Positions 42,251-63,800 of a stretch of DNA of 64,000 bases are shown here, one piece after another. A program made the position numbers and the translations under genes. Source of the DNA: Lepidodermella squamata (lineage: Eukaryota; Animalia; Gastrotricha); the NCBI GenBank assembly GCA_047495785.1, contig JBLDXI010000050.1, positions 434,001-498,000 on the forward strand, in the 5' to 3' direction. The notes under the pieces were generated by a model. That model saw only the letters and a program-made list of their open reading frames with translations. It was not told the origin of the DNA and searched no databases. Every line of letters begins with the position of its first letter. The first letter of the stretch is position 1.

Positions 42251-43135
42251 TCCGGGCGATCCGTTCTTTAAGCGATTGCATCGAACTGCAGAAAGACTTG
42301 GATGAAATCATCAACTGGTTTGACGCTAACGGCCTGTCTGTGAATTCGAAAAAATGCGTCGTGCTTATACTCGGGCAAAACAAATTTATGTTCAAATTCA
42401 AAATTAAAGATGTCGAGCTTGATGTTGTGGACTCAGTGAAAGACCTCGGAATAATTATTGATAAAAATCTCACCTTCTCTGAGCACTGTAACGCATTGGC
42501 AACTAAATGCCTCAGAATTAACGGTGTTATTTGTAAATCGTTCGCCTCTAAATCCTTACGTCTCAAAGCCTATAAAACGTATACTTTATCTCGTCTTGAC
42601 TTTTGCCCGTCTGTTTACTCGCGTTACCTAATAACAGATATTGAAAAGGTCGAATCGATTCAAATCCGCTTCACAAAACGTTTGCTATATCGTAGTACCT
42701 ACTACTCATCGATCGAAGGCTCTTCCTATGAAGAACGACTAAAAAAGCTTGGGTTGTGTTCACTCGAATTAAGACGCTACCAACACGATCTTGCGTTATG
42801 TCATAAAATGTACCAGCGTGCTGTGGACTTAAATTTCTCTGACTTCTTTAATATTTCCACTAATCCGCGCTTACCGCATCATTCTGTTACGATGGAAAGC
42901 TACAGTCATGCCAGCTCTCAGTTTTCATTTGTGAGGCGAGTGCGTCCAGCCTGGAACCGGCTACCATCTTCCGTCGTTAATAATTCGTATTCTTCATTCT
43001 TGAAATATCTTAAATGTACTGACTTGGAAAAATTCACAATTTCTGTGGTGAGGCGCCATAACTTAACGTTTTGTTAATTCTTAATTGCTAAATGTCGAAA
43101 GACAAATTGCAAAATAAAACAGTATCAGTACTACC
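42251..43135 (+). mobile_element. 5'-truncated non-LTR retrotransposon (CR1-like LINE), 885 bp
   Basis: Interrupts a monomer at ...GGGTGCGA|AACGAT, with GCGA duplicated (42247-42250 and 43136-43139). Contains the ORF2 C-terminus, a short 3' UTR with AATAAA (43113-43118) and a CAGTA-T-CAGTA tail instead of poly(A). Confidence 0.9.
42253..43077 (+). pseudogene. LINE ORF2 C-terminal fragment (RT thumb region onward, truncated just after the expected YADD motif)
   Basis: Open frame RAIRSLSDCIELQKDLDEIINWFDANGLSVNSKKC...VKDLGIIID...IEKVESIQIRFTK...YEERLKKLGLCSLELRRYQHDL...RVRPAWNRLPSSVV. These motifs are typical of CR1-group ORF2. There is no endonuclease and no RT catalytic core. Confidence 0.88.
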
Positions 43136-52100: not shown

Positions 52101-52255
52101 AAACGATTTCAGGAAATTCATTGCTCGGGTGCGAAACGATAATGCCTGGCAGACAAAACGCAGCGTGTCCGATCGTTGTGATAGCTCTCACAGAAATTTC
52201 AGAAAATTCATTTCTCGGTTGCGAATCGATAATGCCTGCAGAAAAACGCATCTTG
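43136..52255. repeat. Diverged layer of the 90-bp satellite with indel monomers and irregular HORs (e.g. 919 bp, 2562 bp)
   Basis: Same core motif. Contains 89-, 81-, ~48- and ~33-bp derivative monomers. Blocks repeat at 46396/47315/48234 and at 48807/51369. Confidence 0.95.
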
Positions 52256-52582
52256 TGTAACCGGTGTGAAGTCGACCATGACGAACCGCCGCTCAGATCG
52301 TCGACATGCTACGCATCACCGGCATCGTAGCGCGGTTCCACTCGGCTTACACCGCTACGGCTCACTGACGTTTTAGCGCGATCCCTGTAGCCGACACAGT
52401 AGCTGATGTTTCGCATGACCGGTTCTCATCATCCGGAACCAACACGGCCTCGAAAAACAACCCATCCTGATAGTATTTAAGCTGATGTAATTTGTCGATA
52501 AAATAACAAGTTGTACAAGTATAATAAAGTTGTGAGATTACCACTTCTGCCGTCTCTTGCCTAGTGTCGAACCCCTGTTACA
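52256..52582 (+). repeat. 5' LTR (327 bp)
   Basis: Starts TGTAAC and ends GTTACA (6-bp terminal inverted repeat). No differences from the 3' LTR on visual comparison. Confidence 0.97.
52474..52480 (+). promoter_or_regulatory. Putative LTR TATA box (TATTTAA)
   Basis: TATA-like motif ~50 bp upstream of the LTR AATAAA, the usual U3-R layout. It implies a short R region. Confidence 0.5.
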
Positions 52583-52585
52583 TTT

Positions 52586-52600
52586 TGGTGTCAGAAGTGG
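52586..52600 (+). promoter_or_regulatory. Primer binding site, tRNA-Leu type
   Basis: TGGTGTCAGAAGTGG lies 3 nt after the 5' LTR. It is complementary to the ...CCACTTCTGACACCA 3' end of metazoan tRNA-Leu(CAA); the tRNA sequence is recalled, not searched. Confidence 0.85.
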
Positions 52601-52807
52601 CTCTAGCCAAGAACGGCAGATCCCGCAGTCAAGTTGGAACCGGTCGACCCAAGCGAGCAAGACCAAACCGAAGCAAGCAACCAAGCTACTAACACTAGCA
52701 GAAGAAGCCAAGCGGAAGCAAGCAAACCATCCACCGACCTCCTTGCAATTACCCTAAAGAGACTTGGTCAGAAAACCAGCGCGCAGAAGAAGCCAGCAGC
52801 AACAACA

Positions 52808-53938
52808 ATGACGACAACTCTGTCTATCGACAAGGCGACGACGATCATCCCGAAAATCACCGGCGAATCATGGATGGCATTCGACAATGAGTGGCGACAA
52901 TTCGTCGATATCGTTCACGCTTGTGGTGGCGCCGACCCATTGCCGATACCAACGAGTGGAGCAGACCCAAATGCCTCGGAACCACAAAAATCCAAGGTCG
53001 AGAAGATGCAATATTTTGTCAACATCCTGGGATCGTTCCTACGCGGAAAAGCACTTCAAGTCTGGTATGAAGGTAACCGAGACGACATCAAAACGCTAGC
53101 AACAGCAAAAGCAGTACTGGAGGAAGGCCTCAACCTAAGACTGACAGCAGGCAGAGCAACGAAGCAGTTCTTCTCACGCGTACAAGGCACAAACGAAACG
53201 GTACGTGATTACATCGGCGACCTCAAACGCATAATGCAACACATGGGCAAAACGGAAAGCGAACGTGAGTACTGCCTGACACAACGTTTCCTAATGGGAA
53301 TTAAACCAGCACTACGGGTGGCAGTCTTCCGGCACGGCGAACCGAAGTCACTACAGAGCGCGTATGAACTAGCAGCCCTAGAAGAAGCCGCGCTGAATTC
53401 AACGACACTAAGCGAAAACGGAGCAGTTGTAGCCCAAGTATGGCCAACACCGGACGACATCGGAACCAACGACCCCGTGAAGCTACTGGTTCAGTTGGTA
53501 CGCGATCAAAACGAGATGCTACAAACTATGAAATCGTTAGTCGGACGGAGCAATAATCGTGAGCCCGATCAACGACAGTTTAGCAATAACAACCGCCGAT
53601 ACCCACCACGACAACAGCAAAACGGACGAAACGGTCAACAACAGCCGAGACCACCTACAGCGGGTTGCTACAATTGCGGACGCCACGGCCATATCGCGAG
53701 AAACTGTAACAACGGAAGATCTTGCTACAAGTGCGGACGACGAGGACACGTGCAAGCCCAATGTCGAAGTCAAGCACCTACAAACCAGACACCGAACGAC
53801 CGTTACCCACAAAACCAACCCGACGCAACAGTAAAGCCATGGAACGTACAACAAGTCACGGAAGATCCGATCTACTGGCAACCGCAAGTCGACGAATGGG
53901 GAAACGCAAACGGGTCGACCCCTTGTCCGGGAAAGTAG
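52808..53938 (+). CDS. gag: Gag polyprotein (capsid-like domain plus two CCHC zinc knuckles)
   Basis: First ATG is at 52808, although the frame is open from ~52607. Has a retrotransposon gag motif (RVQGTNETVRDYIGDL) and knuckles CYNCGRHGHIARNC and CYKCGRRGHVQAQC. Confidence 0.93.
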   Translation: MTTTLSIDKATTIIPKITGESWMAFDNEWRQFVDIVHACGGADPLPIPTSGADPNASEPQKSKVEKMQYFVNILGSFLRGKALQVWYEGNRDDIKTLATAKAVLEEGLNLRLTAGRATKQFFSRVQGTNETVRDYIGDLKRIMQHMGKTESEREYCLTQRFLMGIKPALRVAVFRHGEPKSLQSAYELAALEEAALNSTTLSENGAVVAQVWPTPDDIGTNDPVKLLVQLVRDQNEMLQTMKSLVGRSNNREPDQRQFSNNNRRYPPRQQQNGRNGQQQPRPPTAGCYNCGRHGHIARNCNNGRSCYKCGRRGHVQAQCRSQAPTNQTPNDRYPQNQPDATVKPWNVQQVTEDPIYWQPQVDEWGNANGSTPCPGK

Positions 53939-53949
53939 CGGAACGACCC
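53899..53949 (+). promoter_or_regulatory. -1 programmed ribosomal frameshift signal (G GGA AAC plus stem-loop)
   Basis: X XXY YYZ heptamer in the gag frame (53899-53905), a 6-nt spacer, then a GGGTCG...CGACCC stem (53912-53949) with an inner TCCG/CGGA stem. Pol is in the -1 frame and open across this site. Confidence 0.85.
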
Positions 53950-56900
53950 AAGCAACAAGACGATACGAACGACCCGGAAGCATGTATGACGGTAAACAAT
54001 GTAAATAACAATAAGGTGGCGGGTTACGGATTACATGCTGATGTTTCATTTAATAGTAGTGATGTAGGAAAACATATATCGAAAAATTTGTTGTTTATGT
54101 TAGACACAGGCGCAGAAATTAGTTGTATCAATAGCAAACATGTCCCGAAGTCAACAACCCTGGAACCAGCGTTAGCAGTCGGTGCAGACGGTCAAGACCT
54201 CAGCGTGCGAGGAAAAACCAAGTGCGAAGTTACCCCGGAAAATGGTCAAGCATACAAGGACGAAGTTTTGGTTGTCGAAGGTTTGTGCACCGACGGACTA
54301 CTCGGGTTCGACTTCATGAAGCAAAACGCCAACGGTATCAACTTCCAACGCAAGACGCTCGAATTCAAGGAAGGTCCAGTAAAACTCAAAGAAGTCCAAT
54401 CAAGGCGAAAAATGTTGGCAGCCGTACATGCTAGCGAAAAAGTGGAGATCCCAGCGTTCAGTGTCAAAGCGATCCGAGGTACCATTGGTGATGGTAAACG
54501 GAAATCGTACGGAACAGGCATCGTTGTCGGCGCCGAAAACACTTGCAATCAGAAAATGTGCGAAGTTATCCCTAGCCTGACAAAGACACCGTACGGACAA
54601 GTCAACGTACTTTATGTCAATCTGATGGACGAAGCGGTAAGCATTGAAAAAGATGAACCTATTGCAGGGTATGAAGAGGCCGAAGAAGCAACAATCCAAA
54701 CGATCGGTAAATTCCGACGTGCGACCGAAACCGAAAGGAAGCAACTCCCAAAGCCAAACCTCCGCCAGCTGATCAAACTACACAGCGACATCCCGAAAGA
54801 ACACGCCGAGAAATTCTACCAGCTAGCAGAAAAATACCCTGAAATCTTCTCTGTCTCGGACGACGATTTCGGGTACACCACCTACGTCAAGCACGAAATT
54901 CGAACAAATGGCGGCCCAATCCGTCAAACCGGTTACCGCCTGGGACGAAGCCAACTGGAAGAAGTCGAGTCGAAAATCAAGGATATGCTTAAGAAAAAGG
55001 TAATTCGCCCCAGTTCATCTGCATGGTCATCACCGATCGTCATGGTACCCAAAAAGTCGGGCGAAATGAGATTCTGTGTCGACCTGCGCAAAGTCAACGA
55101 CGTCACGGAGAAAGATGCGTTCCCACTACCACGTACCGACGACATATTGGAAGCACTGGGAGGATCGCAACTGTACAGTACTATGGACCTTACCAGCGGA
55201 TACTGGCAATTGGAACTCGAAGAATCAAGCAAGGAGAAGACCGCGTTCGTCACACCCTTCGGACTCTACGAATTCAACCGCATGCCATTCGGGCTGTGTA
55301 ACGCCCCAGCCACGTTTCAAAGATTGATGATGTTCGTACTAAACGGCCTGTTATACCGCGAAGTTTTGGTGTACCTCGACGACATCATCGTATTCAGCAA
55401 GACACTTGAAGAGCAACTCGAACGTCTTGAACGAGTTTTCATTCGACTGCGTGATGCAGGTTTGAAAATTAAACCATCTAAATGCAATTTTCTTTGTCCT
55501 TCAGTTACCTACTTGGGACACGTCGTCTCGAAAGATGGTATCAAACCCGATCCGAATCGCATTTCAGCTGTCAAAAACTGGCCGACACCTAATAGTGCCG
55601 CACAAGTGCGATCATTCCTGGGCCTAGCCAATTATTATCGGCGTTTTGTTCCAAAATTCGCCGACATTGCGAAACCACTATACAATCTCCTCAAGAAAGG
55701 CGAGAAATTCAACTGGACAACAGAAACAAAACAATCCTTCGAAACATTGCGTGACAAACTGGTTACTCACCCGATCTTGGCCTACCCGAACTTCGAGTTA
55801 CCCTTCAGAGTCGACACTGATGCTTCAAACTTTGCTATCGGAGCCATCCTGAGTCAAAAACAAGACGGACAAGAACGAGTCATTGCCTACGCGAGCCGAA
55901 CATTGAACCAGGCTGAACGAAACTACATGACGACGGAACGAGAACTCTTGGCTGCAACATGGGGTGTGGCGCAATTCGCACCATTCTTGAAATCCAAAGC
56001 GCAAGGTGGAGCATTCGAGCTATGGACCGACCACAACCCTTTGACAAGTCTACGCGCTTTGAAAGATCGCGGAGGAAAGCTAGCACGATACGAGTATCAA
56101 CTGATGCCCTATGAAATCACGTTCAAATGGAGAAAAGGCATCGACCATTCTAATGCCGATAGTCTGTCGCGAAGACCCGACCTTGAAGCTTTACCAATGG
56201 TCGGAAAAATCATCACGTTCGAACAACCAGACATCAACCGCGACGACGTTAAAATCGCACAACGAGAAGACGGAGAACTGAATTTGATTATAAAGCAATT
56301 GGAAGAGAATCCAGCGATCGGCGAAAAGTATGGTTTAAAATTAGCTGACAATGTTCTTTATCGTTACAGAGGTGAAAAAGGAGCAATCGTTATCCCGCCG
56401 GCGTTAAGACCTACAATTCTTAAGGCGATCCACGACGATATGGGTCACCTAGGCACCGAACGAACCCTTCAACGATTACGCGAACGATTCTACTGGCGCG
56501 GTTTCGAACTCGATACCGAAATCTACGTCAAATGTTGCGAACAATGTCAACGCCGCAAGAACCCACCAAAAACCCCTGTGGCCCCGCTCAACCCGATTGT
56601 GGTCAACCGACCAATGGAAATCGTCGGATGGGATGTCATGGGACCGATACAGCCAACATCGTCGAGTGGTCACCAGTACATTCTCGTCATTGGCGACTTA
56701 TTCTCCAAATACATCGAAGCATTCCCAATGAAAAACTACACGTCGGAAACACTGCTAAAACACCTCAACGGTTTTATGCTTCGCCACGGAGTACCTCAAA
56801 AACTTTTGAATGATCAAGGTAGTTCGCTGAATTCTGAAGTTGTTGAACAGGTTTGCAAGATGCTGAAAATCAAACACGTTCGAACTTCGAGCTACCACGC

Positions 56901-57744
56901 CCAAACAAATGGTTTCGTTGAACGACAGAACCGGAACCTTCAAAACATGCTAGCCAAGTACCTTCACGGCAAGTCACAGCGCGAATGGGATAGTTACCTG
57001 CCAGTTGCAGTGTTCGCCTACAACACTTCGGAGCACGAATCAACGAAGTACATGCCATATTTCCTATGGTACGGACGACCGCCACGCATCCCGATCGATG
57101 CCTTGCAACTGTACGAACCCTATCACGCCAGCGGTCTTACCCCATCGAAAGAAGACCCACAAGGCTATGCTACGAAAACATGGGCAGCACTGCGCGATGC
57201 GTACGAAGCGACACGGCAAAGACTCTTGAAAGCGCAAGCACGCCAAAAGGACCAGTACGACAAAAAGGAGAACGTGACAAACTACGTAACGGGACAATTG
57301 GTTTGGCTCAATTTACGCACGGTAAACACGAAAAATAACGAAGGTCGCAAATGGCTACTCAGTTGGCGAGGCCCGTTCACCGTACTGGCACCGTTGAAGA
57401 ACAGCACCTACTTGATTCGACTGTTTGATGGCAGTGGACCGGAGAAAGTTGTACACCACAATCGATTGAAACCGTATTTCGGATGCCCACCGAGAACGAC
57501 TAAACAATGGACGGAAAATGTTGGCAGTGACGATCTCGACGTAATCGTTGAAGACCCCGACGAATCAACCAATTGGCCAGAATTCTGGGCAAGTCACAAT
57601 GTCGAGGAACAGTCGGAGCGACCGACGGTCGAGCAACCTGCACCGGCGAGAAGTGACGAACGAGTAATTCCGATCAGATCATTCACGGACGACTTCCTGG
57701 AGGAAACGGATCGACTACTACAAGGATTGCCAATTCACAAATGA
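53902..57744 (+). CDS. pol: Pol polyprotein (protease, reverse transcriptase, RNase H, integrase), probably expressed as a Gag-Pol fusion
   Basis: PR LDTGAEIS; RT FCVDLRKVN, MPFGLCNAPATFQ, YLDD; RNase H DTDAS, ELLA, TDH, ADSLSR; IN HDDMGH...CEQC, WDVMGP, NDQG, VERQN, and WRGPF (GPY/F motif). Uninterrupted frame 53722-57744. Confidence 0.96.
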   Translation, partial: KRKRVDPLSGKVAERPKQQDDTNDPEACMTVNNVNNNKVAGYGLHADVSFNSSDVGKHISKNLLFMLDTGAEISCINSKHVPKSTTLEPALAVGADGQDLSVRGKTKCEVTPENGQAYKDEVLVVEGLCTDGLLGFDFMKQNANGINFQRKTLEFKEGPVKLKEVQSRRKMLAAVHASEKVEIPAFSVKAIRGTIGDGKRKSYGTGIVVGAENTCNQKMCEVIPSLTKTPYGQVNVLYVNLMDEAVSIEKDEPIAGYEEAEEATIQTIGKFRRATETERKQLPKPNLRQLIKLHSDIPKEHAEKFYQLAEKYPEIFSVSDDDFGYTTYVKHEIRTNGGPIRQTGYRLGRSQLEEVESKIKDMLKKKVIRPSSSAWSSPIVMVPKKSGEMRFCVDLRKVNDVTEKDAFPLPRTDDILEALGGSQLYSTMDLTSGYWQLELEESSKEKTAFVTPFGLYEFNRMPFGLCNAPATFQRLMMFVLNGLLYREVLVYLDDIIVFSKTLEEQLERLERVFIRLRDAGLKIKPSKCNFLCPSVTYLGHVVSKDGIKPDPNRISAVKNWPTPNSAAQVRSFLGLANYYRRFVPKFADIAKPLYNLLKKGEKFNWTTETKQSFETLRDKLVTHPILAYPNFELPFRVDTDASNFAIGAILSQKQDGQERVIAYASRTLNQAERNYMTTERELLAATWGVAQFAPFLKSKAQGGAFELWTDHNPLTSLRALKDRGGKLARYEYQLMPYEITFKWRKGIDHSNADSLSRRPDLEALPMVGKIITFEQPDINRDDVKIAQREDGELNLIIKQLEENPAIGEKYGLKLADNVLYRYRGEKGAIVIPPALRPTILKAIHDDMGHLGTERTLQRLRERFYWRGFELDTEIYVKCCEQCQRRKNPPKTPVAPLNPIVVNRPMEIVGWDVMGPIQPTSSSGHQYILVIGDLFSKYIEAFPMKNYTSETLLKHLNGFMLRHGVPQKLLNDQGSSLNSEVVEQVCKMLKIKHVRTSSYHAQTNGFVERQNRNLQNMLAKYLHGKSQREWDSYLPVAVFAYNTSEHESTKYMPYFLWYGRPPRIPIDALQLYEPYHASGLTPSKEDPQGYATKTWAALRDAYEATRQRLLKAQARQKDQYDKKENVTNYVTGQLVWLNLRTVNTKNNEGRKWLLSWRGPFTVLAPLKNSTYLIRLFDGSGPEKVVHHNRLKPYFGCPPRTTKQWTENVGSDDLDVIVEDPDESTNWPEFWASHNVEEQSERPTVEQPAPARSDERVIPIRSFTDDFLEETDRLLQGLPIHK

Positions 57745-57840
57745 ACAGTAGTAACCAGTAACCCCGAAACCCTTAGTATGTAGTAAGATTAAAGAAAGTG
57801 GTTGCTGCGCGGCGTCAAGCGCCAGCGCAAGGTGTATGTG

Positions 57841-57852
57841 TTTTGTTTTTAG
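57841..57852 (+). promoter_or_regulatory. Putative splice acceptor for a subgenomic env mRNA
   Basis: TTTTGTTTTTAG immediately precedes the env ATG at 57853. Confidence 0.65.
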
Positions 57853-59691
57853 ATGAATATTTTATCTTATGTTATATGGAGTGCGACGATAATTGGAACG
57901 GTAGCGACGCCCGTCGAGCAGGAATTTTGGCAGAAGCTGTTACTTCTTGGTCGCAGTCATGAAATGATCGCATGGTATGACACTGAAGTCCCTGTTGTCC
58001 TCCACCACGACCTCCACTTCCGACCACTCCATATCCGAGCCGGCATGTTCAAGTGGAAGGCCCTCAAAGCCATGATTGACCAATGGAACGCCAATTTCCC
58101 CAAACTAACCCCAATATTCACCGATACCGTCGACGACAACCGTCGAGCCAAACGGGACGTTTGCGAGTATGCGGTGCTACGATGGTTCTATGAACTTTTC
58201 AATGGAAAATGCTCGATATTGGGCAGGGGCGCCAAAGAAGCGCTACTCGATGAAGCCAACACCCTTCAACGCGAAAACACCGTAGCCCGAATAATCAATG
58301 ACCAGACGGCAACACTGTCGACGGAGGCTCATCAACTCCATAGTGAAGTGGGCGACATTGAGGATTTTCTCACTAATTATTATCAAGGTGGAGTGGGCAA
58401 TGCGGTCGATTCTCAATTACTACTAGCAGTGTGGCATTTATCGAATTTCGTCGAACAACGCACCGTTTGGGACCAGATCGAACGGTTGAAGGCTGCAAGT
58501 CGCATGGGAAGCTTTGCAATCAGCGATTTGCCGAACGCTGTACGTGCTAAATTCGAAACAGTCGTCATCTCTGCGATCAACCACATTAACGGTTCGGAAC
58601 TTACGCGGGCGATGGTCCTAGGGCACGCACCGATCTTCCAACGACCACACTTCCAGTGGGTTACCGAGCAGTCACAAGTAAGCTTCCAACTAAGGGCGTC
58701 GCTACCAATCGTCGCGATGGAGAGTTGCCATATCTTCCGATTGTCACCAGTGACGTTGAAAACAAACCGCGGTTGTGTAGGACCTGCCGAAGACGCTTAC
58801 AAGGGCAAGTTAATTTTGAAATGTGTTGACAAGTACTTTTATTTTGAAGAGAGCCGGCTGGCACAATGTCATCAAGCCAACGCCAGAACCTATCTTTGCG
58901 ATAACGCCGCAAGCCAATCCCGAGTTACAGTTCGGCCGAACGCCCATTCACTCGATGTTCTGGCGCATGGCGAGTCAGTGGTGTGCCCGAGATTAAAAAC
59001 GATTCGAATCAGTGGAGATACCGTGTTGTTGACTGGAGATGCCCGGGTCAAGTTTACGAAAGGGGAGAACGTCTCCGAGGAGTTGGCACCGGCTGGTACG
59101 GTGATGCAAATTCCGTGTGGTGGCTCGCTCCAAGTTGCCGACGAGCTACCGCTGATGGTTGTTGGATCCAACTGTATGGACAATCTTTCGATGGCGCCAA
59201 TCGAAATTGCAAGTGTTGACGAGCTCGATTTTACGGTGAATACGAATCAGTCGAATAATACTGTGTTGGAAACCCTGGTGACAAAGATGGTGGCAAGTCG
59301 AAAATCGGATAAGTGGGCAGATTTAGAAGCAGCGTACACCCGTCGTAGTAACGAAATTGGCAATCTGTTCGCGAAAACGGACGAGGAACTCGCTAACGTC
59401 AAAGCTGAAATTGCTAAGATAGTCGAAATTGGCGATCAAGTTCCGCTTGTATGGTACTTCTTGGCAACAATCCTGATGATCCTGTCGATGGCAAATTCTG
59501 TAGCTTTGGTGTTTCTTCTTGGTCGTACAAAGGTGGCAACGACAATTCGTTCGGTAGTACGACCGCAACCAGAACCGCAACTAAGCTTAACGCCGACGGC
59601 AGTTCGGTACGATAAGGAAGAAGATATCGTTTTCATCACGCCACCTGACGAACCCGACGAGCCCGACGTTAAAGATGGGCACCTCATTTAG
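57853..59691 (+). CDS. env: Envelope glycoprotein, class I (F-type) fusion protein architecture, 612 aa
   Basis: N-terminal hydrophobic signal peptide. Furin site RRAKR at aa 97-101 (58141-58155) is followed by a hydrophobic segment (VCEYAVLRWFYELF). Then a heptad-like region, a Cys-rich region, N-X-S/T sequons, a second helical region, a TM segment (LVWYFLATILMILSMANSVALVFLL) and a cytoplasmic tail. Located 3' of pol. Confidence 0.88.
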   Translation: MNILSYVIWSATIIGTVATPVEQEFWQKLLLLGRSHEMIAWYDTEVPVVLHHDLHFRPLHIRAGMFKWKALKAMIDQWNANFPKLTPIFTDTVDDNRRAKRDVCEYAVLRWFYELFNGKCSILGRGAKEALLDEANTLQRENTVARIINDQTATLSTEAHQLHSEVGDIEDFLTNYYQGGVGNAVDSQLLLAVWHLSNFVEQRTVWDQIERLKAASRMGSFAISDLPNAVRAKFETVVISAINHINGSELTRAMVLGHAPIFQRPHFQWVTEQSQVSFQLRASLPIVAMESCHIFRLSPVTLKTNRGCVGPAEDAYKGKLILKCVDKYFYFEESRLAQCHQANARTYLCDNAASQSRVTVRPNAHSLDVLAHGESVVCPRLKTIRISGDTVLLTGDARVKFTKGENVSEELAPAGTVMQIPCGGSLQVADELPLMVVGSNCMDNLSMAPIEIASVDELDFTVNTNQSNNTVLETLVTKMVASRKSDKWADLEAAYTRRSNEIGNLFAKTDEELANVKAEIAKIVEIGDQVPLVWYFLATILMILSMANSVALVFLLGRTKVATTIRSVVRPQPEPQLSLTPTAVRYDKEEDIVFITPPDEPDEPDVKDGHLI

Positions 59692-60033
59692 AATAGTTAA
59701 CACTGTGTAGCAGGTAGCTCTTTGAACTGAAATATTCTTTTCTGCGCCGTTTGTTTATTGAAAAGGGGAGGGAAAATAGTAAGTTGAATAGTGGAATGAT
59801 TGTAGCATTCATTACAGTAGTAACGTGCAGTAGTTTGTAGCGTATTATGCAAAGTAGTATACATAGTATACAATGTAGTTGTCGTATGCAATGAATGGTT
59901 GCGTGTGAATGGTAGTGTTGTATAGTTGCATGAATGACTCTGTAAAAACATGTAGTTCAGAATGTATTTTGTTTTGAAAAAGGTTATCTCACAACTCTAC
60001 GGTCGACTGTTCTATATCGGTGTTGGAGTGATG

Positions 60034-60387
60034 TCACGGAACGCGTTGCGGCGCATCCTCGTCGTTATTGTCATCGCCGCCAACAATTGCGACATTGGCA
60101 GCAGCCTGCGGCACAGCCCGATCCACGGTCGCGTCAATCGCGTTAAGCGCATCCGCAAGTTCTGGCGCGAATTCCGCAACCAAGGCCTCCAGCTCCGGAT
60201 CGGGTGCCAATAATTGTTGACGGACGCTTTGATGGAAACGCATGACTGCGTCGTCAACTGCAACAGTGCGGGCTTGGTCAGCATAAACCGATAACTGGAG
60301 CTCGTACGTCGCAATAATAAAATGGGCGAATTCTACGACACCCGCAATCGTCGTTAAGTCTAGAGCTTCGAGGCCCGCGATCGACAT
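60034..60387 (-). CDS. Putative antisense accessory protein (117 aa; 163 aa if started at the ATG inside the 3' LTR, 60525)
   Basis: AAAATG start context. GC-rich, coding-like block set in an AT-rich UTR. The product is Ala/Val/Asp-rich, looks helical and has an acidic tail. A minus-strand AATAAA lies downstream at 59754-59759. No recognised homology. Confidence 0.55.
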   Translation of the reverse strand: MSIAGLEALDLTTIAGVVEFAHFIIATYELQLSVYADQARTVAVDDAVMRFHQSVRQQLLAPDPELEALVAEFAPELADALNAIDATVDRAVPQAAANVAIVGGDDNNDEDAPQRVP

Positions 60388-60480
60388 TTTGGCAATGTTG
60401 CAGATTTGAAAGTTTCCCAATTGAAATGAATAGGCAATGGCAAGTACCCCAACAAGTTGGTTTGATGGACACCGGTAGTC

Positions 60481-60501
60481 AAAGGATAAACGGGGAGGAA
60501 A
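60481..60501 (+). promoter_or_regulatory. Polypurine tract
   Basis: AAAGGATAAACGGGGAGGAAA directly abuts the 3' LTR. Confidence 0.88.
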
Positions 60502-60828
60502 TGTAACCGGTGTGAAGTCGACCATGACGAACCGCCGCTCAGATCGTCGACATGCTACGCATCACCGGCATCGTAGCGCGGTTCCACTCGGCTTACACCG
60601 CTACGGCTCACTGACGTTTTAGCGCGATCCCTGTAGCCGACACAGTAGCTGATGTTTCGCATGACCGGTTCTCATCATCCGGAACCAACACGGCCTCGAA
60701 AAACAACCCATCCTGATAGTATTTAAGCTGATGTAATTTGTCGATAAAATAACAAGTTGTACAAGTATAATAAAGTTGTGAGATTACCACTTCTGCCGTC
60801 TCTTGCCTAGTGTCGAACCCCTGTTACA
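60502..60828 (+). repeat. 3' LTR (327 bp)
   Basis: Direct repeat of 52256-52582, followed by the TSD CTTG and the remainder of the interrupted monomer. Confidence 0.97.
60769..60774 (+). terminator. Polyadenylation signal AATAAA in the 3' LTR
   Basis: AATAAA followed by GT/T-rich sequence, ~55 bp before the LTR end. The 5' LTR copy is at 52523-52528. Confidence 0.65.
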
Positions 60829-63800
60829 CTTGTCCGATCATTTTAGTAGCTCTCACAGAAATTTCAGAAAATTCATTGCCCTTGAGTGAATGAAGAATGG
60901 CTCGCCGGCAGAACGCGACGTGTCCGATCATTGTGGTAGCTCTCACAGAAATTTCAGAAAATTTATTGCCCTCGAGTGAAAGGAGAATGCCTCGCCGACA
61001 GAACGCGTTGTGTCCGATCATTGTGGTAGCTCTCACAGAAATTTCAGAAAATTTATTGCCCTTGAGTGAAAGGAGAATGCCTCGCCGACAGAACGCGTTG
61101 TGTCCGATCATTGTGGTAGCTCTCACAGAAATTTCAGAAAATTCATTTCTCGGGTGCGAAACGATAATGTGGTAGCTCTCACAGAAATTTCAGAAAATTC
61201 ATTTCCCGGTTGCGAATCGATAATGCCTGCAGAAAAACGCATCTTGTCCGATCATTTTAGTAGCTCTCACAGAAATTTCAGAAAATTCATTGCCCTTGAG
61301 TGAATGAAGAATGGCTCGCTGGCAGAACGCGACGTGTCCGATCATTGTGGTAGCTCTCGCAGAAAATTCATTGCCCTTGAGTGAATGGAGAATGCCTCGC
61401 CGACAGAACGCATCGTGTCTGTTTATTGTGGTAGCCATCACAGGAATTTCAGGAAATTCATTGCTCGGGTGCGAATCGATAATGCCTGCAGAAAAACGCA
61501 TCTTGTCCGATCATTTTAGTAGCTCTCACAGAAATTTCAGACAATTCATTGCCCTTGAGTGAATGGAGAATGCCTCGCCGACAGAACGCATCGTGTCTGT
61601 TTATTGTGGTAGCCATCACAGAAATTTCAGAAAATTTATTGCCCTTGAGTGAAAGGAGAATGGCTCGCCGGCAGAACGCGACGTGTCGGATCATTTTGGT
61701 AGCTCTCACAGAAATTTCAGAAAATTTATTGCCCTTGAGTGAAAGGAGAATGCCTCGCCGACAGAACGCGTTGTGTCCGATCATTGTGGTAGCTCTCACA
61801 GAAATTTCAGAAAATTCATTTCTCGGGTGCGAAACGATAATGTGGTAGCTCTCACAGAAATTTCAGAAAATTCATTTCCCGGTTGCGAATCGATAATGCC
61901 TGCAGAAAAACGCATCTTGTCCGATCATTTTAGTAGCTCTCACAGAAATTTCAGAAAATTCATTGCCCTTGAGTGAATGAAGAATGGCTCGCCGGCAGAA
62001 CGCGACGTGTCCGATCATTGTGGTAGCTCTCGCAGAAAATTCATTGCCCTTGAGTGAATGGAGAATGGCTCGCCGACAGAACGCATCGTGTCTGTTTATT
62101 GTGGTAGCCATCACAGAAATTTCAGAAAATTCATTTCCCGGTTGCGAATCGATAATGCCTGCAGAAAAACGCATCTTGTCCGATCATTTTAGTAGCTCTC
62201 ACAGAAATTTCAGAAAATTCATTGCCCTTGAGTGAATGAAGAATGGCTCGCTGGCAGAACGCGACGTGTCCGATCATTGTGGTAGCTCTCGCAGAAAATT
62301 CATTGCCCTTGAGTGAATGGAGAATGCCTCGCCGACAGAACGCATCGTGTCTGTTTATTGTGGTAGCCATCACAGGAATTTCAGGAAATTCATTGCTCGG
62401 GTGCGAATCGATAATGCCTGCAGAAAAACGCATCTTGTCCGATCATTTTAGTAGCTCTCACAGAAATTTCAGACAATTCATTGCCCTTGAGTGAATGGAG
62501 AATGCCTCGCCGACAGAACGCATCGTGCCTGTTTATTGTGGTAGCCATCACAGAAATTTCAGAAAATTTATTGCCCTTGAGTGAAAGGAGAATGCCTCGC
62601 CGACAGAACGCGTTGTGTCTGCTTATTGTGTTAGCTGTCACAGAATTGTGAGAAAATTCATTTCTCGGGATCGAAACGATTTCAGGAAATTCATTGCTCG
62701 GGTGCGAAACGATAATGCCTGGCAGACAAAACGCATCGTGTCTGTTCATTGTGTTAGCTGTCACAGAAATGTCATGAAAAGAATTGTCTAGGAGGAAATT
62801 GAGAATACAGCCAGACAGAACGCATCGTGTCCGATCATTGTGGTAGCTCTCATAGAAATTTCAGAAAATTCATTTCTCGGTTGCGAATCGATAATGCCTG
62901 CAGAAAAACGCATCTTGTCCGATCATTTTAGTAGCTCTCACAGAAATTTCAGACAATTCATTGCCCTTGAGTGAATGGAGAATGCCTCGCCGACAGAACG
63001 CATCGTGTCTGTTTATTGTGGTAGCCATCACAGAAATTTCAGAAAATTTATTGCCCTTGAGTGAAAGGAGAATGCCTCGCCGACAGAACGCGTTGTGTCC
63101 GATCATTGTGGTAGCTCTCACAGAAATTTCAGTAAATTTATTGCCCTTGAGTGAAAGGAGAATGCCTCGCCGACAGAACGCGTTGTGTCTGCTTATTGTG
63201 TTAGCTGTCACAGAATTGTGAGAAAATTCATTTCTCGGGATCGAAACGATTTCAGGAAATTCATTGCTCGGGTGCGAAACGATAATGCCTGGCAGACAAA
63301 ACGCATCGTGTCTGTTCATTGTGTTAGCTGTCACAGAAATGTCATGAAAAGAATTGTCTAGGAGGAAATTGAGAATACAGCCAGACAGAACGCGACGTGT
63401 CCGATCATTGTGGTAGCTCTCGCAGAAAATTCATTGCCCTTGAGTGAATGGAGAATGGCTCGCCGACAGAACGCATCGTGTCTGTTTATTGTGGTAGCCA
63501 TCACAGGAATTTCAGGAAATTCATTGCTCGGGTGCGAAACGATAATGCCTGCAGAAAAACGCATCTTGTCCGATCATTTTAGTAGCTCTCACAGAAATTT
63601 CAGACAATTCATTGCCCTTGAGTGAATGGAGAATGCCTCGCCGACAGAACGCATCGTGTCTGTTTATTGTGGTAGCCATCACAGAAATTTCAGAAAATTT
63701 ATTGCCCTTGAGTGAAAGGAGAATGCCTCGCCGACAGAACGCGTTGTGTCTGCTTATTGTGTTAGCTGTCACAGAATTGTGAGAAAATTCATTTCTCGGG

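Follow-up and report, generated by a model that had tools for sequence, protein, structure and literature searches.

What kind of mobile element sits in the satellite DNA of the gastrotrich Lepidodermella squamata, how long has it been there, and which of its open reading frames (ORFs) are genes? The question is raised by an 8,573-bp long terminal repeat (LTR) element at positions 52256-60828, on the plus strand, of a 64,000-nucleotide stretch of contig JBLDXI010000050.1 (assembly GCA_047495785.1, positions 434,001 to 498,000 of the forward strand; this whole stretch is referred to below as the window). In addition to gag and pol, the element contains an env-like ORF3 and, on the opposite strand, a shorter ORF4. 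An original prediction, made from the letters of the DNA, had described an intact, very recent, env-bearing element of the Gypsy type inserted in satellite. This description was borne out: the LTRs are identical, a CTTG target-site duplication (TSD) flanks them, and gag, pol, and env are open. We conclude that the element is very likely a complete, provirus-like, env-bearing Ty3/gypsy (Metaviridae) copy of the non-insect type. It is not a new category, as elements of this class were known from across Metazoa before; 1,512 intact env-carrying Ty3/gypsy elements, with env of either the F type or the gB type, have been catalogued across most animal phyla (Chary & Hayashi, eLife 2026, PMC13524379).

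The borders of the element could be set to the base. The two LTRs are direct repeats of 327 bp each (52256-52582 and 60502-60828, plus strand) that are equal at 327 of 327 bases, the match ending exactly at both borders. They begin with TGTAAC and end with GTTACA, and thus have TG...CA termini. One copy of CTTG adjoins the 5' LTR (52252-52255), and the other adjoins the 3' LTR (60829-60832). The site as it was before the insertion can be read from the surrounding array, in which neighbouring monomers contain 23 copies of a 22-nt string composed of the left flank, a single CTTG, and the right flank, with 0 copies expected. When 8,577 bp (the element plus one CTTG) are subtracted from the spacings of satellite repeats that span the element, 391, 178, and 88 bp are left, all of which are periods of the array. 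Because 23 monomers contain the empty site and the register of the array is kept across the element, we conclude that the element is a clean insertion into one satellite monomer, with a 4-bp target duplication and without rearrangement. The 90-bp satellite itself covers positions 1-42250 and 43136-64000 except for the element, and a k-mer scan of the window revealed only two non-satellite stretches, 42251-43135 and 52256-60828.

The genes of the element carry no inactivating lesion, as had been predicted: 0 stops and 0 frameshifts were found in each of gag, pol, and ORF3, apart from the usual -1 overlap of gag and pol. The gag gene (52805-53938, plus strand) has 377 codons counted from the first ATG at 52805, while its frame is open from 52634. 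Its product contains two CCHC zinc knuckles (Pfam zf-CCHC, two stretches, E = 1.8e-9) and gives a weak capsid-like match to Pfam Retrotrans_gag (E = 4.5e-4), which is weaker than the cut-off. The pol gene (53722-57744, plus strand; 1,340 codons) is open throughout. Pfam matches within it, all on the plus strand, follow the order protease, reverse transcriptase (RT), RNase H, integrase (IN), i.e., integrase comes after RT. They correspond to the protease (RVP, 54085-54327, with a DTGA motif), RT (RVT_1, 55045-55524, YLDD), RNase H (RT_RNaseH, 55714-56112), the IN zinc domain (Integrase_H2C2, 56392-56562, HHCC), the IN core (rve, 56605-57051), and the IN C-terminal domain of the GPY/F type (Integrase_p58_C, 57370-57474, GPF). 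Neither a chromodomain nor a dUTPase was present among the Pfam matches of the element's proteins. The location of such a chromodomain-less element in satellite may reflect mere tolerance of insertions there, and targeting cannot be shown from a single copy.

Signals in cis, which the original prediction had also listed, were likewise found. The 5' LTR contains a TATA-like box at 52474 and an AATAAA at 52523, a stretch resembling a primer-binding site begins with TGG 4 nt after the 5' LTR (52586-52603, plus strand), and a polypurine tract adjoins the 3' LTR (60488-60501, plus strand); the last two were read from the sequence directly. The pol frame is -1 relative to gag, with an overlap of 217 nt, and the overlap contains a candidate -1 frameshift zone (53899-53935, plus strand). 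Its two heptamers, GGGAAAC (from 53899) and GGGAAAG (from 53929), follow the X XXY YYZ pattern. Both are in the phase of gag, and the second adjoins the gag stop. A point against this picture is that comparison of folding with shuffled sequences revealed no stimulatory structure 3' of the slippery heptamers. The original prediction had also invoked structured non-coding elements, for which no support was found. Rfam gave no match at E ≤ 1, and the leader, the region after env, and the stretches downstream of the frameshift sites folded no better than their shuffles (z from -1.1 to +2.7). On the coding strand of gag and pol, A strongly exceeds T (AT skew 0.19-0.28), unlike in env and in the satellite; this A-rich skew agrees with a bias known from many retroelements.

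A search with the Pol sequence returned more than 6,400 relatives with the Ty3/gypsy-type Pfam set, none of them above ca. 51% identity over the region from RT to IN. The best are metagenome or read-assembly proteins with ca. 50% identity, and the named ones, at 38-50% identity, come from a freshwater sponge, a pseudoscorpion, teleosts, and frogs. A collection of 15 billion proteins contained nothing near-identical to either Pol or ORF3. The RNase H match is separated from the IN zinc domain by a bridge of 93 residues. According to PMC13524379, a duplicated 'pseudo' RNase H marks the insect clade of env-carrying elements, and a 'mini' domain is found at this place in the non-insect group; judged by its length, the bridge would be short for a second ('pseudo') RNase H and compatible with a 'mini' domain.

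ORF3 (57853-59691, plus strand) encodes a protein of 612 residues with the sequence features of a membrane glycoprotein. A predicted signal peptide (57853-57909) is followed by RAKR, a furin-type site that spans residues 98-101 of 612 (58144-58155), and, directly after it, by a hydrophobic segment between two cysteines (58156-58227). Further along are predicted long helices, a Cys-rich beta region, a membrane-proximal helix, a single predicted transmembrane segment close to the C-terminus (ca. 59440-59520), and a tail of ca. 55 residues; five N-glycosylation sequons are present. The protein matches no Pfam family even at E ≤ 10, Baculo_F included. Comparison with the PDB by sequence revealed no relative, and a profile search of the PDB returned nothing or noise. 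A word-index search of 5.8 billion clusters was blank both for the protein and for the alignment of its family. An exhaustive HMMER scan of 1.84 billion representative proteins identified four relatives (E from 5e-7 to 4e-4, 22-25% identity), which are encoded by short assembled contigs of 2.5-10.7 kb. An alignment of seven rows was made from ORF3, these four relatives, and two cluster members. Because the alignment has eight invariant cysteines, and its members share the Cys-flanked segment as well as a basic cleavage site and a C-terminal anchor, ORF3 is judged to belong to a real, thinly sampled family of predicted glycoproteins. The relatives derive from read assemblies and one ENA assembly, and the contigs of three of them, 8.0-10.7 kb in length, are roughly as long as a complete LTR element, which hints that they lie in similar LTR elements.

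The distance from the env stop to the 3' LTR is unusually long, 810 bp, and it is here that ORF4 is found. Three parts can be told apart in this region. A first purine tract of 17 nt (59760-59776, plus strand) is located 69 nt after the env stop and has the same core as the tract of the 3' LTR; it is followed by an AT-rich stretch and, from ca. 60030, by a G+C-richer block. ORF4 (60034-60525, minus strand), which was detected in a scan for ORFs, encodes 163 residues. It starts at an ATG situated 24 nt into the 3' LTR and has internal methionines at residues 47 and 95, and its predicted product is acidic and alanine-rich.

To our mind, the evidence leans towards ORF4 being an extra gene, as its codon usage suggests. 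The codon-usage model was trained on gag, pol, and env, with each gene scored while itself left out. In its own frame, ORF4 scored +0.20 bit per codon, and its scores in the other five were negative; gag, pol, and env scored 0.14-0.21. The original prediction of a fourth, antisense ORF therefore holds to the extent that the frame exists and its codon usage is gene-like. It could well be, nonetheless, that ORF4 is open by chance, within a spacer that is richer in G+C, and that the element is a plain gag-pol-env one. Several results weigh on this side. When the whole antisense strand was shuffled, 4% of shuffles gave an ORF as long as ORF4 or longer. No relatives of ORF4 were found in Pfam, searched at E ≤ 10, or in the PDB, and another long antisense ORF, of 170 residues, is present over gag and pol (53537-54049). 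A chance frame, however, does not readily account for the score of ORF4, which equals that of the real genes and exceeds that of every antisense window of 492 nt in the element (mean -0.19, standard deviation 0.12), whereas the 170-residue antisense ORF scored only -0.01. G is strong at the first codon position of ORF4 and low at the second, and base composition changes abruptly at ca. 60030, at the stop-codon end of the frame. At the composition of ORF4, the probability that 163 codons are open by chance is ca. 0.001 per frame.

If ORF4 is a gene, it may belong to a module that came to separate an older purine tract from the 3' LTR. Several observations on the layout of this region can be recorded. 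The two purine tracts of equal core (59760-59776 and 60488-60501) are ca. 720 bp apart and bracket ORF4. The stretch 59692-60033 is very poor in C (11%) and rich in short words like TAGTA and GTAGT, and a 9-bp unit occurs twice at 59855-59872. The shift in base composition at ca. 60030 separates this stretch from ORF4.

Complex retroviruses have antisense genes at the 3' end of the provirus, such as HBZ of human T-cell leukaemia virus type 1 (HTLV-1) and ASP of human immunodeficiency virus type 1 (HIV-1). ORF4 resembles them in being on the minus strand, at the 3' end, with a start beside or inside the 3' LTR, and the analogy is positional only. The original prediction had gone further and likened the whole element to a 'complex' retrovirus genome, which is an overstatement, as the likeness depends on one ORF with no relatives in Pfam or the PDB.

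The class of the ORF3 glycoprotein was addressed by structure modelling. An AlphaFold model built with the seven-row alignment was of low confidence, with a predicted local distance difference test score (pLDDT) of 41. The order of its parts is long helices at residues 125-217, a beta-rich core at 260-430, and a helix at 487-527 next to the membrane anchor. A Foldseek comparison of this model with the PDB returned 73 chains at E ≤ 1e-3, with E down to 1e-6. The best 50 of the 73 are all fusion (F) proteins of pneumo- or paramyxoviruses, matched over 400-500 aligned columns with TM-scores of 0.2-0.3. In the BFVD database, the same model matched a mixture of invertebrate-virus glycoproteins, including baculovirus F/Ld130 and paramyxovirus F0. 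Identity of ORF3 to the matched paramyxovirus, pneumovirus, and baculovirus F proteins is 10-13%. Independently of the fold, ORF3 has the layout of F, in that its cleavage site is at ca. residue 100 and the fusion segment comes next. The layouts of retroviral surface-transmembrane (SU-TM) proteins, herpesvirus gB, and phlebovirus Gn-Gc were also considered, and do not fit the order of the cleavage site and fusion segment.

Because the layout of the cleavage site and fusion segment is that of F and the fold matches are to F, ORF3 is probably an F-type class I fusion glycoprotein, insofar as the model can be relied on. Several findings count against this assignment. The model on which it draws is of low confidence, with TM-scores as low as those given above, and a model made from the single sequence, used as a negative control (pLDDT 35), gave no significant fold match. 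The top matches in BFVD are mixed, and the protein matches neither Pfam Baculo_F nor any PDB chain at the level of sequence. An alternative is that ORF3 encodes a membrane glycoprotein of another class, or a captured host gene, in which case the element would be a three-ORF Ty3/gypsy retrotransposon. We consider this unlikely. It would agree with the lack of a sequence match in Pfam and the PDB, with the low confidence of both AlphaFold models, and with weak partial matches of the single-sequence model to alphavirus E2. In addition, transmembrane, coiled-coil, and cleavage motifs alone are no proof of env, as was pointed out by Rodriguez et al. (PMC5408684). It does not agree with the order of features, for cleavage at about residue 100, a hydrophobic segment, long helices, a beta core, a helix, and a transmembrane segment follow each other in ORF3 as they do in F, nor with the behaviour of the alignment-informed model, whose best 50 matches in the PDB, over 400-500 columns, are all F.

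The age of the insertion follows from the LTRs and the genes. No difference between the LTRs and no lesion in any gene has arisen since integration, and we conclude that the insertion is very recent. The absence of differences over 327 bp sets a 95% upper bound of ca. 0.9% on LTR divergence. It is highly improbable that the insertion is instead old and that gene conversion, or homogenisation within the array, has preserved the identity of its LTRs and frames. Satellite arrays do undergo frequent conversion and unequal exchange, gene conversion could in principle keep LTRs identical, and a single copy of the element is visible in the 64-kb window; these points have to be set against recent insertion. 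Yet the same single copy means that the window holds no second one to act as a donor, and conversion of this kind would have to have left 8.2 kb of unique sequence and three long ORFs without a lesion, with the TSD and flanks intact and the register of the array kept.

That the element is a strict-sense insect errantivirus (the gypsy/17.6/ZAM clade), merely an atypical one, is scarcely credible, for although its gag-pol-env order, 4-bp TSD, -1 gag/pol frameshift, and predicted F-like env are common to that clade, its Gag has two CCHC knuckles where errantiviral Gag has no zinc finger (PMC3383448), its env does not match Baculo_F at E ≤ 10, the 93 residues that separate its RNase H from its IN zinc domain would leave little room for another RNase H-like domain (PMC13524379), and those of its named Pol relatives that are nearest to it belong to a sponge, a pseudoscorpion, fishes, and frogs, and not to insects.

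An env-bearing Ty3/gypsy copy of the non-insect type has well-described counterparts. The closest in description are the 'ancient errantiviruses' with F-type ENV of PMC13524379, with which the element shares the order GAG-POL-ENV, LTRs that are more than 99% identical, the short bridge between RNase H and IN, and a Pol related to ordinary non-insect Ty3/gypsy elements. Their ENV has a signal peptide, a furin-type site, a hydrophobic fusion segment, a helix at the C-terminal end of the ectodomain, and a transmembrane segment, and so, by prediction, does ORF3; the head-and-stalk helices of their ENV are matched here in the low-confidence alignment-based model and not in the single-sequence one. 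The 'ancient errantiviruses' are intact and apparently recently expanded in many phyla, and the Lepidodermella element is likewise intact. It differs from them in that its env is very isolated, with four weak relatives among 1.8 billion representatives, and in having Gag knuckles and an antisense ORF, of which PMC13524379 makes no mention. The conclusion of that paper is that several Ty3/gypsy lineages contributed to env-carrying elements.

In the TelKA clade of bdelloid rotifers (Rodriguez, Kenefick & Arkhipova 2017, PMC5408684), Ty3/gypsy-type elements carry an F-like env of ca. 600 residues. As compared by description, the Lepidodermella element is alike in being of the Ty3/gypsy type and in having an env-like protein of ca. 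600 residues that appears nearest to class I paramyxovirus F. The rotifer lineages often have a dUTPase, while none is present here. The TelKA paper also shows that LTR elements capture further ORFs, and this occurs in the position of ORF3 and not in antisense.

Drosophila errantiviruses such as gypsy, ZAM, Idefix, and 17.6 (PMC3383448) share with the element the order gag-pol-env, the -1 shift between gag and pol, a 4-bp TSD, a furin site, and an env that belongs to the F family, as ORF3 is predicted to do. Their env, however, matches baculovirus F by sequence, and that of the element does not. Errantiviral Gag has an arginine-rich region instead of a zinc finger, while two knuckles are present here, and accessory genes have not been shown for Drosophila errantiviruses (review PMC3383448). 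The original prediction had pointed to the TG...CA ends and the two Gag knuckles as departures from the classical Drosophila type, and both stand, together with the lack of a match to Pfam Baculo_F. The LTR ends of Drosophila errantiviruses differ from TG...CA. The further idea that the element may represent a separate env-carrying lineage fared less evenly. It is right in that the element falls outside the Drosophila type, and it is not a new idea, such elements being already catalogued (PMC13524379, PMC5408684).

The F proteins of paramyxoviruses and pneumoviruses and that of baculoviruses (Ld130) consist of a small N-terminal fragment, a basic cleavage site, a fusion segment, a long heptad helix, a beta core, a second helix, and a transmembrane segment, and the predicted layout of ORF3 is the same. 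The differences are that ORF3 is encoded by a retroelement, that its identity to these proteins is 10-13% with no profile match, and that the likeness in fold comes from a low-confidence model.

By analogy with known retroelements and viruses, the following cycle can be proposed for the element. Transcription would begin in the 5' LTR, which has the TATA-like box, and end at the AATAAA of the 3' LTR. Gag would be made from the full-length RNA, and Gag-Pol would be made when ribosomes slip by -1 within the 217-nt overlap. A tRNA of the host would pair with the TGG-initiated site after the 5' LTR and prime minus-strand DNA, while the purine tract before the 3' LTR would prime the plus strand. 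Integrase would then join the TG...CA ends to the chromosome, giving the 4-bp target duplication. ORF3 would be expressed from a subgenomic RNA as a type I membrane glycoprotein with the F layout. Cleavage at RAKR, presumably by furin, would separate a small N-terminal piece from a large one that is anchored in the membrane. The new N-terminus of the large piece would be the Cys-flanked hydrophobic fusion segment, followed by the long helices, and would act in membrane fusion; as in errantiviruses, ORF3 could in this way enable passage from cell to cell. Activity and infectivity of the element are compatible with its anatomy.

Intact env-bearing Ty3/gypsy elements illustrate how fusion genes are exchanged between retrotransposons and enveloped viruses and how such elements persist in animal germlines. 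The Lepidodermella element extends by one a catalogue that already has more than 1,500 members, and its points of note are the possible antisense gene and the isolated env family. It is a clean specimen, with zero LTR divergence, all genes open, and an exact target site in satellite, and therefore can serve as a reference sequence for its own family and for a sparsely sampled branch of F-like glycoproteins. A more far-reaching reading is that the element combines an F-type env family almost absent from public protein data with an acquired antisense accessory gene, which has an older polypurine tract on one side and the 3' LTR on the other and starts inside the LTR. We offer this combination tentatively and regard it as doubtful. 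By analogy, such an antisense layout would be one known from complex vertebrate retroviruses and not shown for errantivirus-like elements. Conservation and transcription of ORF4, if demonstrated, would make it the first accessory gene of such invertebrate elements.

The satellite that surrounds the element is of two regimes. Positions 1-42250 consist of homogeneous 90-bp units with 84% matches, while positions 43136-64000 have mixed periods of 90, 123, 178, ca. 260, 391, and ca. 450-480 bp, those above 90 bp being higher-order periods made up of at least two monomer variants. The other non-satellite stretch, 42251-43135, is an insertion of 885 bp, placed precisely where the homogeneous 90-bp array gives way to the one of mixed periods. 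It has one open frame (42253-43077, plus strand), in which the tail of RVT_1 is matched weakly and below threshold (E = 0.073), and probably represents a truncated non-LTR retrotransposon of which the 3' part is left. Both mobile-element insertions are located at or within the second regime of the satellite (43136-64000).

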